DNA of 57,734 nucleotides from Octopus bimaculoides (GCF_001194135.2 NC_069001.1:37851450-37909183), one strand, 5' to 3'. Shown: positions 3,380 through 57,050, numbered from the stretch's first letter. Made by a program: numbers and translations. Notes: generated by a model from the sequence alone, not told the origin.

Positions 3380-4068
3380 TATAGAAATCACATTTTGTAT
3401 TGAGTACGACATTGCGGTGCGGCATCGAAGCCCGCTTGGCCTTTGTGTTGGCTGGCCATCCACGATCACCAGTTAAAACGGTGGAAACAAGGGAGTTTGA
3501 ATATATAAAAAAAAAAACAGCCTTCTTTTCAATTAGTTTACGACAATTAATATGTAAGTATTATTAATAGAAACAACATTTACATTGTTTTGGTCGTGTC
3601 ATTTTCCTACTATATATCTTTGTTTTGATGTATTCAAAGATGTCTTAATCCTCATCCGATCGGCTATCACGGGTTTTCAAACTTTTTGACTTGAGGACCC
3701 CTTTATATTTCGGGCTTTACCTTAGGGACCCCCTTATAAACGCTTATGAAATTTATACATAAATATTTGCTTAAAATAACATTTTTGCATTTATTTATTT
3801 AACAGTATTTAACAAATAGGTTTATTGTCAATTAAAAGATTTCGATTAAAAAACATATATAAAATCAAATTGCCCATAAAAAGTATTTGCTGTCCACGGA
3901 TCCCTGTCTTGTCCTTGCGGACCACAGTTTGAAAACCCCTGGGCTATCACATATGTAATAGAAGTAAATTGAAAAACTTGCTTTACCTGACATTAACTAT
4001 TGTTGTCTTAATACTTCCACTGTTTTCCTTTCCACACTCCTTTTCAATTATCGTTATCCACCACCACC
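3380..4068 (+). promoter_or_regulatory. ZNF upstream module copy M1 (type 2), upstream of B
   Basis: Core attaatatGTAAGTattattaatagaaacaac...ttttcctttcca...caattatcgttatcc, with GTAAGT at 3554-3559. Its 5' part matches the reverse complement of 54200-54420. It is split by a hAT MITE. Function is inferred from position only. Confidence 0.6.
3670..3941. mobile_element. hAT-type MITE inserted in module M1
   Basis: Ends are (c)gggttttcaaact and agtttgaaaacccctg. 8-bp TSD GGCTATCA at 3662-3669 and 3942-3949. Other module copies show the empty site (cggctgtcacatatg). Confidence 0.85.
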
Positions 4069-4889
4069 NNNNNNNNNNNNNNNNNNNNNNNNNNNNNNNN
4101 NNNNNNNNNNNNNNNNNNNNNNNNNNNNNNNNNNNNNNNNNNNNNNNNNNNNNNNNNNNNNNNNNNNNNNNNNNNNNNNNNNNNNNNNNNNNNNNNNNNN
4201 NNNNNNNNNNNNNNNNNNNNNNNNNNNNNNNNNNNNNNNNNNNNNNNNNNNNNNNNNNNNNNNNNNNNNNNNNNNNNNNNNNNNNNNNNNNNNNNNNNNN
4301 NNNNNNNNNNNNNNNNNNNNNNNNNNNNNNNNNNNNNNNNNNNNNNNNNNNNNNNNNNNNNNNNNNNNNNNNNNNNNNNNNNNNNNNNNNNNNNNNNNNN
4401 NNNNNNNNNNNNNNNNNNNNNNNNNNNNNNNNNNNNNNNNNNNNNNNNNNNNNNNNNNNNNNNNNNNNNNNNNNNNNNNNNNNNNNNNNNNNNNNNNNNN
4501 NNNNNNNNNNNNNNNNNNNNNNNNNNNNNNNNNNNNNNNNNNNNNNNNNNNNNNNNNNNNNNNNNNNNNNNNNNNNNNNNNNNNNNNNNNNNNNNNNNNN
4601 NNNNNNNNNNNNNNNNNNNNNNNNNNNNNNNNNNNNNNNNNNNNNNNNNNNNNNNNNNNNNNNNNNNNNNNNNNNNNNNNNNNNNNNNNNNNNNNNNNNN
4701 NNNNNNNNNNNNNNNNNNNNNNNNNNNNNNNNNNNNNNNNNNNNNNNNNNNNNNNNNNNNNNNNNNNNNNNNNNNNNNNNNNNNNNNNNNNNNNNNNNNN
4801 NNNNNNNNNNNNNNNNNNNNNNNNNNNNNNNNNNNNNNNNNNNNNNNNNNNNNNNNNNNNNNNNNNNNNNNNNNNNNNNNNNNNNNNNN

Positions 4890-5645
4890 CAGTGTGATAT
4901 CTGTTATAAATCATTCTCTCAAAAGTCTAACTTAACTATTCACAAGCAAGTTCATACAGGAGAGAAACCATATCAGTGTGATATCTGTGATAAATCATTC
5001 TCTCTTAAGCATACATTAAGTTCTCACAGACGCATTCATACAGGAGAGAAATCATATCAGTGTGATATCTGTGATAAATCATTTTTACAAATAGGTAACT
5101 TAACTGCTCACATGCACGTTCATACAGGAGAGAAACCATATCAGTGTGATATCTGTTATAAATCATTCTCTCAAAAGTCTAACTTAACTACTCACAAGCA
5201 TGTTCATACAGGAGAGAAACCATATCAGTGTGATATCTGTGATAAATCATTCTCTCTTAAGCATACATTAAGTTCTCACAGACGCATTCATACAGGAGAG
5301 AAACCATATCAGTGTGATATCTGTGATAAATCATTTTTACAAATAGGTAACTTAACTGCTCACATGCACGTTCATACAGGAGAGAAACCATATCAGTGTG
5401 ATATCTGTTATAAATCATTCTCTCAAAAGTCTAACTTGACTATTCACAAGCACGTTCATACAGGAGAGAAACCATATCAGTGTGATATCTGTGATAAATC
5501 ATTCTCTCTAAAACATACATTAAGTTCTCACAAACGCATTCATACAGGAGAGAAACCATATCAGTGTGATATATGTGATAAATCATTCTCTCAAAAGTCT
5601 AACTTAACTACTCACAAACGCATTCATACAGGAGAGAAACCATAG
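4890..5645 (+). CDS. ZNF-B, 5'-partial C2H2 ZNF; 9 visible fingers ending at a premature TAG
   Basis: CxxC..HxxxH fingers with TGEKP linkers arranged as a 252-bp, 3-finger repeat. The start is hidden in gap 4069-4889. TAG at 5643-5645 replaces a linker Tyr. Confidence 0.85.
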
Positions 5646-6300
5646 CAGTGTGAGATCTGCGGTAAACCATTTTCCAAATGTGGAAATTTCTGTAGGCACA
5701 AACGTATTCATACGGGAGAAAAGCCATATCACTGTAATATTTGTGGAAGATCATTCTCTGATTGTTCTAGCTTATCTACACACGAACATATTCATACAAA
5801 GGAGAAGCCATATCATTGTGACATCTGTGGTAAATCGTTTCCTGCAACCAAAATCTTAGATCTACACCAACATGCACATAGAGAGAAATTATAGGACTGT
5901 CCTATCTGTAATAAATCATTCCGTTCACCTAGTTTCATGACTAAACATAAACGTATTCACACAGGAGAGAAACCGTGCGATGTGAGTGGTAAATCATTTT
6001 CTTTGAAGCCACACTTGACTACACACACGTATTCATACTGGAGATAAACCACATCGCTGTGATATCTGCGGAATAGTCTATGCTCAAAACAGCCACTTAA
6101 CTGCACACAAACGTACTCATACAGGAGAGAAACCATTCCAGTGTGACATCTGCAATAAATCGTTCCTTGCAAATGGTGAATTGACCCGTCATAAACGTTC
6201 TCATACAGGAGAGAGGCCATGTCATTGTGATGTCTGTGATAAATCATTCTTTCAAAAAGGCCACTTAAATAAACACATACGAATTCATACAAAACAGTAA
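5646..6300 (+). pseudogene. Decayed 3' tail of ZNF-B (8 relic fingers)
   Basis: Finger sequence continues past the stop. There is a second in-frame TAG at 5892-5894, small deletions, and a 2-nt deletion at ~6027. The original end is HTKQ-TAA at 6298-6300. Confidence 0.9.
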
Positions 6301-7124
6301 CGAGCTCATTATCAGAATGGAGTTTGTGATAAATGCAGTGCATGATGTAGAATATTTGTTCATGATGATCAAATGGATTTTTCCCAGTTTTTCAGACAAG
6401 AAAACATAAATTTACTCATCAAAAATTGAAAACAACACATTTACTGCATTGTGTTTATGAAAACTATCAAGATTCATTGAATGAAAAATTGTGCATGATA
6501 AAACTATAAATATATTCCCCTTTCCAAGAAGATATCACAGATATATATATATATATATATATATAATGTTCCATCTGATATATTTCTGGAAGGGAGAAGG
6601 TATACACTTGATGTATTTGACATTATGCGTAAATAACTGAGACACGTATTCTCTTCAATCTTGTTATAACATCACTTAAAATGTTAGAAATCATAGACTG
6701 GTGTCATCATCACCACCATCATCATTTGATATCTGGTTTCCAAGCTGCCTTGGATTCTGCACTCTTTGATACTCCAACTGTTTCTATATTTGATTTTACT
6801 GACTCTGAAGAACCTCTGAGGATCCTTCTTACTCATTTCCACCATTTAGACATTGTAATCATGGCTGGCTATTCATTCTAACACCAATCACTTTACACAG
6901 TGTCCTGGGACAGTAAATGGACACTTAACAAAGATCCAAAATATAGATATACAGCCTAGTCTCCATGTCTGGCAACAGATTAACATCCATTTTGCCCTCC
7001 TAGCATCGATGGATGTATCTTTTTTAGCTCTGTATGTTACCAACCATTTCCTGTCGTTTGTCATATCACGTGTGTGGTTCACGATCTGATAGCTTTAGCT
7101 TCTGGACATTTCGCTCCATATGTT

Positions 7125-55367: not shown

Positions 55368-55496
55368 CACTAGCGTAGCTGGAGTGTGTGCCGCCCCCGA
55401 ACCCCACAAAAAAAACATATATTACCTACAGCAGACCCAAAAGTCCGACCCCTTTAAAAGTGCCGCCCCTACCGTTCCCCACTAACTACGCAAGTG
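55368..55496. mobile_element. 129-bp hAT-type MITE
   Basis: Ends cactagcgtagct and aactacgcaagtg. Perfect 8-bp TSD CATGACTT at 55360-55367 and 55497-55504. Confidence 0.85.
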
Positions 55497-55872
55497 CATG
55501 ACTTGTACATGATTTATATGTGATGGCATTACACAGGAGTGACCAAAAAAGAAACTTATTCAATTTCGTAAGTGAAGTGGGACAACGAATCAAAAAAATG
55601 TCAGTTAGTCGAATAAAAGCCTTTAGTATAGGGACTTGTCAGTGAATCGTTTCTTCCAGCCTGTGGCGTTTGAGACTTTCGGAGGGGCTGAGCTGCTGAC
55701 AGCGAAATTCTTCTTATCGTTTGCGGTTCTCCTTACCCGAGACGTCAGGTGATGCTTGTCAGTGTGCTTGGCTGTTCTAACGCCTTAGCTGCGCCCGGCG
55801 CAGACCTGAAATTTTTAGGTGGGGGCCACGGCTAGTCGATATCCCTTTTTAGGTGGGGGTTAGGGCTAGTCG

Positions 55873-55955
55873 ATAAGTATCAGTCGAGTACCCCAGTGCT
55901 CGACTGATACTTATTTCCTAGATCCCGAAAAGTAACGTCAATCTCGGTGGAATTT
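55873..55955 (+). repeat. Dispersed repeat containing a perfect 16-bp hairpin
   Basis: ataagtatcagtcgag (55873-55888) pairs with ctcgactgatacttat (55899-55914). The tail resembles 54600-54660 and the reverse complement of 26480-26530. Confidence 0.6.
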
Positions 55956-56254
55956 TATAAAAATAATAACAATAAATATATTAATAATTCTTGTTTGCCA
56001 CAAGGGTAACGAACATTCGAGGAAGAATTTGAGGAACAGTAATCTAAAATCATTAGGTGATTTCATCGAACTTGCCGGAAATTAGAAAGCCATTTCAAGT
56101 TAACGGGGCGGGGGTGAGTTACAGCTGAAAACTTTACATCGGAAATTGTAATCTATAGTAGTTATATAATGAAATATCCAAATTCCAATTATAATAAAGA
56201 CAGCTAAACACAGGTAATGCATATGTACGTCAGTGATGTCGCCTAGCAGTATAT

Positions 56255-57050
56255 TGTTAAAACTTGCGATGTAATTCTGTTGTTTGCCTGCAATTGTTTG
56301 ACAAACATGTTTATTGTTGGTTCAGATCTGGTTTACAACTGACATTTAGAGGATCCAATTAAATAGAGACGATTGCTAATTAACTGTGGAAAGAAATAGC
56401 TATAATATTCTTCATTATTTCGTTATGGTTATTTCTACAGAAATTATAGCCAGCACTGATTTTTTGCTACAACGTTTCGTATCGAGATGTCAGATGTAAA
56501 CAAATAAATTCTTTATGATGTCGATGTGAAAATCTAATCGAAGGTTTGTTGTAAATTAGTTGTGTTGAAGCCGTCATTTTCCATCCTGACTTGTGACTTC
56601 TTCATCATTCGCGCTAGATTGTTAATGCGAGGAACAAAGTGCGATTCATCTGCCTCTCAGCGTTGACTGTCCAACAGGGTTGAATCCGAGATACGCCCCA
56701 TTCGTCTAAATCTATCGCTAGAACCTTTCTCGTTCGCACGTCTACACATATTCCTCTGCTCCCACCACCCAAGGAGAAAAAGAGCACCGAGCTGGTCCTA
56801 CTTGTGCCCACATGACCGCACTCATTCTTCCTCTTCCAGTAGGGCCCCTTTCTTCCCGCTTCATCTCATCTTCACACCATTAATATGTAAGTATTATTAA
56901 TAGAAACGTTTACATTGCATAGGTCGTGTCATTTTTCTCTTCTGTTTGTTTTGATGGGTTCAAAGACAAAAGAAAAGTAACGATGTTGTCTCAATCTTCC
57001 TCATCCGGTCGGCTTTCACATATAGTAATAGAAGTGAGTTGAAAAACTCC
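56255..57050 (+). promoter_or_regulatory. ZNF upstream module copy M10 (type 1) with a ~265-bp insertion; predicts a + strand ZNF beyond the window
   Basis: Matches M3 on both sides of 56614-56877. GTAAGT at 56887-56892, and tagaaGTGAGTtgaaaaac is present. Confidence 0.6.

Follow-up and report, generated by a model that had tools for sequence, protein, structure and literature searches.

The KRAB zinc-finger (ZNF) clusters of human chromosome 19 are made of tandemly duplicated poly-zinc-finger genes, and in the clustered protocadherins the variable exons are spliced to shared constant exons, with a stochastic choice made through CTCF sites. Octopus C2H2 ZNFs are among the largest lineage-specific transcription-factor expansions, and their regulation is not described; expansions of this kind in octopus and coleoids were reportedly also presented by Albertin and colleagues in 2022. 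Here we analyzed a 57,734-nt stretch of Octopus bimaculoides chromosome CM046621.1 (GCA_001194135.2, ~37.85-37.91 Mb, first nucleotide at about 37,851,450, same orientation), called the window below, which contains eight C2H2 ZNF arrays (genes A-H) and ten copies (M1-M10) of an AT-rich module that an earlier note on this DNA had described as a portable promoter and first-exon cassette. The octopus and coleoid C2H2 expansions studied by Holzinger et al. (2025; PMC12513265) concern the same superfamily and the same species, and the expanded genes were found to sit together on a small number of chromosomes; that paper nowhere uses the words promoter, exon, intron or UTR (untranslated region), and no description of the module was found there.

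Based on our analysis, the module moves with the gene and not independently, which is the ordinary outcome of cluster expansion. We consider it probable that a single ZNF gene unit, copied by local segmental duplication, gave rise to the ten copies as its paralogous 5' ends, most likely a promoter together with a non-coding leader. When the gene units were compared in pairs, most pairs gave collinear blocks on the same strand that run from the module through a block of ~400 nt preceding the start codon (the pre-ATG block) to the coding exon and the 3' flank. The B and G units can be aligned over 10184-11209 and 12387-12706, before the coding sequence (CDS), at 79-96% identity, and their introns are alignable as well (10630-11209 against 44997-44514, 79-85%), the alignment being broken by a ~1.2-kb insertion in B. 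Since this homology runs into the intron, the module has no 3' boundary. Genes A and H have more than 2 kb of 3' flank in common. For each gene pair the local BLAST identities of the module, the pre-ATG block and the CDS are similar, and module identity rises with that of the coding tail (Mantel r=0.63, exact p=0.014); its correlation with pre-ATG block identity is not significant (r=0.51, p=0.16). The same order of homology along the unit, together with a module divergence that tracks gene divergence, indicates that whole units were duplicated and that the module forms their 5' end; the earlier proposal that it is duplicated with each gene is borne out. The A-B block resembles the H-G block, and the simplest history is one in which whole units, two-gene blocks included, were duplicated again and again, in tandem and inverted. 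In such a cluster paralogous 5' regions are expected and not surprising.

Self-BLAST and an nhmmer search with a profile of the module core (--max) found the ten copies and nothing else in the window (E 5e-28 to 6e-96), the next match (E=0.006) being the second piece of M7, and self-BLAST with any proposed copy retrieves the other nine. The copies lie where the earlier note had placed them and on the same strands, to within a few tens of bases, M7 being without a gene of its own and M10 directed out of the window, as had been seen. The count of eight copies upstream of, and co-oriented with, ZNF genes also holds, but only seven genes are preceded, because M8 and M9 both stand before gene H. 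The linkage of M1 to gene A is unproven because an assembly gap intervenes (4069-4889); its estimated size falls inside the equivalent distance in the paralogues (0.65-2.4 kb). Continuity across gaps was judged against the paralogues only.

All ten copies have a common core of ~330 nt with a sharp start at ATTAATATGTAAGT. Upstream of the core there are two sequence classes, type I in seven copies and type II in three, and no homology between them was detectable (z <= 2.4 against shuffles). The conservation peak consists of the 46 nt from ATTAATATGTAAGT, with a mean pairwise identity of 0.92-0.93 compared to 0.65 for all well-occupied columns (column-shuffle test, P<0.0002), and identity falls steadily on both sides of it. 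It was suggested in the earlier note that the best-conserved parts are a half cAMP-response element (CRE) abutting an inverted CCAAT box, a GTAAGT downstream of it and a second donor-like GTGAGT. GTAAGT is intact in 9/10 copies. The half-CRE/CCAAT motif, CGTCATTGG, is confined to the type I copies (exact in five, one mismatch in M9, degraded in M10) and therefore lies outside the common module, the peak being at ATTAATATGTAAGT; GTGAGT is exact in six copies, whereas M1 and M3 have weakened forms, M5 has lost it and M9 lacks it. The 11-mer ATATGTAAGTA occurs nine times in the window, against 0.04 expected, each time inside a module, and CGTCATTGGCTCTGT occurs five times exactly and once with one mismatch, also against 0.04 expected; the bare 9-mer with one mismatch allowed shows no excess over chance. 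An apparently far better conservation of the module than of the rest of the unit was an artefact of forced global alignments: local BLAST identities are alike, and only the 46-nt peak is exceptional.

The consensus of the core has stop codons in every frame, in agreement with the non-coding nature that had been claimed. No terminal inverted repeats (TIRs), long terminal repeats (LTRs), poly-A or target-site duplications (TSDs) were found at the ends of the module, as had also been claimed, and its 5' edges vary among the copies. The miniature inverted-repeat transposable element (MITE) inserted in M1 and the TIR element inserted in M7 do show such marks. M1, M7 and M10 each carry an insertion within the module. 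By looking at the modules proximal to intact genes (M2, M3, M4, M5, M6 and M8) we can see that ATTGG and GTAAGT are kept in six of six, whereas among the other four copies (M1 at a pseudogene, the orphan M7, the extra copy M9 and M10, which points out of the window) ATTGG is found only in M9.

A pre-ATG block stands before each of the seven genes that have an assembled 5' region, and there are no orphan copies of it in the window. A polypyrimidine tract and the acceptor TATTTCAG|AAT are kept in 7/7 of these genes, and a second one, TTTGCAG|CAT, is retained wherever this part is assembled (six genes), the sequence in D being TTTACAG. A conserved acceptor before every ATG implies an upstream exon, and the only conserved donor comes from the module. 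GTAAGT and the first acceptor are 0.7-2.2 kb apart, and insertions account for the variation. This pairing of donor and acceptor fits the proposed shared promoter and non-coding exon 1, a role that is plausible and unproven. The retention of motifs in the modules of intact genes and their decay in the others, together with the donor and acceptor, favour a promoter-plus-leader function, again unproven. Directly after the conserved acceptor (12514-12560, with equivalents in E, F and H) there is a conserved upstream open reading frame (ORF) of four codons (ATGACATTGGCATAA), and in antisense there is a perfect donor sequence here in gene B (CTCAGGTAAGT) and GGTAAAT in E, F and H.

The repeat, its linkage and orientation, the collinear homology along the units, the peak of conservation and the conserved donor and acceptor motifs are observed, whereas the transcription start, the donor in use and any regulatory effect are inferred. 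In our proposal the unit consists, in order, of the upstream region, the ~330-nt core, an intron of 0.7-2.2 kb, the ~400-nt pre-ATG block, a single C2H2 coding exon and the 3' flank, and was multiplied by tandem and inverted local segmental duplication in a lineage-specific O. bimaculoides ZNF cluster. The module would most likely be the core promoter and non-coding leader exon, with the leader spliced onto the acceptor TATTTCAG|AAT, ~375 nt before the ATG. One possible option, sub-model (a), is that the leader exon ends at GTAAGT, the better conserved of the two donors, in which case the strongest conservation would be intronic. In sub-model (b) the inverted CCAAT would stand at about -64, the AT-rich TATTATTAATAG would be TATA-like, transcription would start near the initiator-like GTCATTTT and a leader exon of ~130 nt would end at GTGAGT; the start of the core as the conservation peak would thus be explained.

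For the comparison with related genes elsewhere, a profile of six N-termini was used to locate family members; a search with a 43-aa N-terminus gave no candidates. The loci compared span 10 kb on each side of four genes (L005-L008), one locus from O. bimaculoides (CM046628.1) and three from O. sinensis with four genes, that is, five related genes in total; one 1.2-kb Logan contig (L004) was added. The pre-ATG block lies upstream of every related gene (E 4e-3 to 2e-59) and the acceptor TATTTCAG is kept in three O. sinensis genes. On the Logan contig the second part of the core precedes the ATG of the gene by 640 nt and is co-oriented with it. A metagenome scan for the core gave no matches. An "analogous module" common to L005, L007 and L008 turned out to be a tRNA-derived short interspersed nuclear element (SINE), a separate family.

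Several observations weigh against a promoter and leader that serve the whole family. Gene C has an intact ORF and a pre-ATG block, and the profile search of the window found no module for it. At the five related genes (L005-L008) the core is absent within 7.6-10 kb upstream, and expression in the family is therefore possible without the module or with another 5' end. The earlier statement that the module points into almost every ZNF gene is thus correct within the window (7/8 genes) but not elsewhere (0/5 related genes). Each sub-model has its own drawback: in (a) the CCAAT is just 14 nt from the exon end at GTAAGT, and in (b) the intact gene F has a module, M5, that lost GTGAGT. Looking up the exact proteins for transcript contigs led only to the genome contig for C and D, and to nothing for B (from its ATG) or for F and H (from TTG starts). 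It was also found that paralogues, even within one C2H2 expansion clade, fall in different co-expression modules, and a regulatory switch after duplication was suggested (Holzinger et al., 2025); these data argue against simple co-regulation. The absence at gene C and in the ~36 kb compared at four other ZNF loci suggests that the module is not a repeat spread over the whole genome, and it is not common to all members of the family. It marks the sub-lineage to which this cluster belongs, and a crude tree of the pre-ATG blocks, a weak guide, suggests that it was lost or replaced in some lineages.

One of the questions that these observations raise is whether the module has a function at all. 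It may be passenger DNA, a non-functional upstream or intronic sequence copied along with the gene, in which case the true promoter would be in another place, such as the pre-ATG block or the sequence directly upstream of it. Module identities in the range of 80-90% are near those of the pre-ATG block and the CDS in the same pairs, which is what shared age alone predicts, and gene C and the five relatives elsewhere keep the pre-ATG block without the module. Against this stand a sharp peak of conservation (0.93 against 0.65) on donor or TATA-like sequence, motif decay in the copies tied to a pseudogene or to no gene, and a polypyrimidine-CAG acceptor kept in the seven assembled genes and in three O. 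sinensis relatives, implying an upstream exon. We regard the passenger explanation as doubtful. A small RNA gene, of spliced-leader type or another structured RNA repeated in the cluster, would fit a core that offers a short sequence followed by GTAAGT many times over. We know of no spliced-leader trans-splicing in molluscs, and each of the copies is linked to a single gene in the same orientation. A tRNA-derived SINE or a known RNA family was considered for the module and dropped, as Rfam gave no family for the core at the gathering score, only noise at E<=10, and no tRNA gene was detected when the window was scanned for them, nor any tRNA-like head; a structured RNA was likewise rejected, the fold of the core being no more stable than that of shuffled sequence (z=+0.67). 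Such an RNA gene is therefore highly improbable.

Another hypothesis, closer to the cassette of the earlier note, is that the core from ATTAAT onward spreads or is swapped among ZNF genes without the gene body, the means being ectopic recombination, gene conversion or transposition. The core begins sharply at ATTAATATG below two unrelated upstream classes, the insertion in M10 falls at the same ATTAAT, M7 is an orphan and M9 an extra copy, and the distribution of the module over the family is patchy when set against the tree of the pre-ATG blocks. Just upstream of M2, M4 and M6 there is an element of ~80 nt with 96-99% identity among units B, E and G, compared to ~85-90% for its flanks, suggesting gene conversion. 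Against a module that is portable in this sense, there is no TIR, LTR, poly-A or TSD at its bounds, the homology between B and G extends into the intron without a 3' edge, module divergence follows gene divergence, and there are no matches in ~36 kb of DNA upstream of the genes at four other ZNF loci, where the true interspersed repeats of the window do recur. We find independent spreading unlikely. Only slightly less unlikely is a narrower form, in which the ~330-nt core would be a self-contained minimal promoter-leader that was re-joined to unrelated upstream sequence at the ATTAAT breakpoint and was gained, lost or exchanged by ectopic recombination or gene conversion. If this is true, turnover of 5' ends, beside coding change, makes octopus ZNF paralogues more diverse in their regulation. 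The 5' end of a gene unit that was copied as a whole is still the reading that best fits our data, and the coordinates of its parts are given in Table 1.

Table 1. Positions of modules, genes, pre-ATG blocks, assembly gaps and other elements in the window (counted from its first nucleotide).
Feature	Position	Strand	Remarks
M1, type II, upstream of pseudogene A	3375-3670 + 3942-4068	+	ends at assembly gap; interrupted by 271-nt MITE (~3671-3941) with 9-bp TSD GGCTATCAC; CCAAT-like site mutated; second donor GTAAAT
M2, type I, gene B	10179-10751	+	hairpin 10197-10264 (+); CGTCATTGG 10289-10297; GTAAGT 10312; GTGAGT 10488
M3, type I, gene D	20587-21159	+	GTAAGT intact; second donor weakened to GTGAAC
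M4, type I, gene E	30582-31396	-	upstream hairpin element 31319-31396 (-)
M5, type I, gene F	38670-39135	-	GTAAGT intact; second donor lost (ATGAGT)
M6, type I, gene G	45017-45582	-	hairpin element 45501-45582 (-)
M7, type II, no gene	47174-47614 + 48987-49135	-	interrupted by 1.37-kb TIR element 47615-48986 with 8-bp TSD AAAACAAC; GTAAGT destroyed by 4-nt deletion
M8, type II, proximal to gene H	53858-54433	-	GTAAGT and GTGAGT intact; ~110-nt insertion separates two core parts
M9, partial type I, distal to M8	54662-55034	-	upstream part and first ~100 nt of core only; truncated by interspersed repeat 54587-54663, which recurs in O. sinensis loci
M10, type I, pointing out of window	56247-57122	+	CCAAT degraded; 252-nt insertion (56627-56878) at ATTAAT boundary, between degraded CCAAT and core
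Gene A finger array	4893-6288	+	pseudogene extent 4890-6420
Gene B single-exon ORF	12888-13991	+	367 aa, 12 C2H2 fingers
Gene C ORF	16920-18278	-	
Gene D ORF	21722-23317	+	
Gene E ORF	28159-29253	-	
Gene F ORF	35371-36474	-	
Gene G ORF	42568-43650	-	5' end falls in gap
Gene H ORF	51640-52995	-	
Pre-ATG block, gene B	12369-12887	+	acceptor TATTTCAG ends 12513; second acceptor TTTGCAG ends 12767
Pre-ATG block, gene C	18279-18762	-	
Pre-ATG block, gene D	21443-21721	+	
Pre-ATG block, gene E	29254-29771	-	
Pre-ATG block, gene F	36475-36960	-	
Pre-ATG block, gene G	44096-44426	-	
Pre-ATG block, gene H	52996-53498	-	
Gap	4069-4889		821 N estimated; hides intron, acceptor, ATG and N-terminus of gene A
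Gap	25895-25960		no bearing on modules
Gap	37156-37188		within gene F intron
Gap	43651-44095		takes away ATG and first fingers of gene G
Gap	46302-46895		downstream of M7; room for a gene only if far bigger than estimated
Gap	47933-48655		within element inserted in M7
Mariner-type transposase ORF	31628-32758	+	between units E and F; intact, 351 aa from ATG
Interspersed repeats in 3' flanks	15020-15302, 16576-16666, 24020-24180, 25961-26245, 40540-40690, 42070-42190		one family
GT/CA-rich stretch	32975-33511		low complexity; long imperfect palindrome; spurious 155-aa ORF

The window has 35% G+C and seven N-gaps. Each intact gene is a one-exon ORF with an N-terminus of ~30 aa (ME.ELC...) followed by 11-18 fingers, and Pfam analysis of the B, C and D products found C2H2 finger families only, without KRAB, SCAN, ZAD or BTB. 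In this assembly gene A has the form of a pseudogene (two in-frame stops, one frameshift), and its array has a near-identical three-finger unit that is repeated three times. The reading frame of gene G is open between the gap edge and the stop codon. Upstream of M1, around a gap at 2342-2538, there are fragments (1-963, 1901-2341 and 2539-2703) that are 90-98% identical to the last fingers and the 3' flank of gene A; they result from either a partial local duplication or a duplication in the assembly. An 809-nt "inverted repeat" (4448-5256 and 43287-44095) was rejected, being mostly N paired with N. There is no public gene call for gene B. Another call starts at the gene E stop codon (L003 16438-21596, which is window 28159 to past 33317, minus strand); its product of 822 aa extends beyond the mariner copy, and it is probably a chimeric model that fuses E with an upstream ZNF. 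The protein cluster collection contains no ATG-start form of E, F or H, and the search with full-length ZNF proteins was dominated by vertebrate ZNFs. M9 and M10 stand head-to-head, 1.2 kb apart, and gene C is likewise divergent from M3 and gene D; each of these pairs might share a bidirectional upstream region.

Other elements are found in the window. The ~80-nt element upstream of M2, M4 and M6 folds into a hairpin of ~23 bp (-24.2 kcal/mol, z=-4.4). It gave no covariation, with three copies only, and no Rfam match, and its arms had no match in a literature search or in the supplements examined of the octopus microRNA paper. It may represent a tract of gene conversion, the precursor of a small RNA or a regulatory element. 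The transposase ORF is of the Tc1/mariner type with HTH_Tnp_Tc3_2-like domains, and the representative of its 90%-identity cluster is an O. vulgaris protein. The repeat family of the 3' flanks is also found upstream of ZNF genes in the O. sinensis loci (L006-L008).

With a defined 5' module that can be aligned and has a peak of conservation, and with a conserved acceptor besides, there are now coordinates at which start sites and splice junctions can be sought, and the co-expression of the paralogues that share the module becomes testable. In comparison with known systems, promoters derived from transposable elements, as well as MITE or SINE insertions, also place repeated non-coding sequence upstream of many genes. 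Unlike them the octopus module is without termini or TSDs and was not found at the four other ZNF loci compared, while the real MITE, TIR and SINE insertions of the window do show such marks. The clustered protocadherins are alike in that each clustered paralogue is preceded by its own promoter with a short, highly conserved motif, yet each octopus ZNF gene is complete; no shared downstream exons were seen, and no test was aimed at them. From the KRAB-ZNF clusters of human chromosome 19 the octopus cluster differs in having no KRAB, SCAN, ZAD or BTB exons, in carrying the whole ORF in one exon and in a 5' module that is AT-rich and not a CpG island, in a cephalopod host. It resembles them in its lineage-specific C2H2 genes, in local segmental duplication in both orientations, in scattered pseudogenes and partial units and, if our proposal is right, in a paralogous promoter and 5' leader that each copy keeps as its own.

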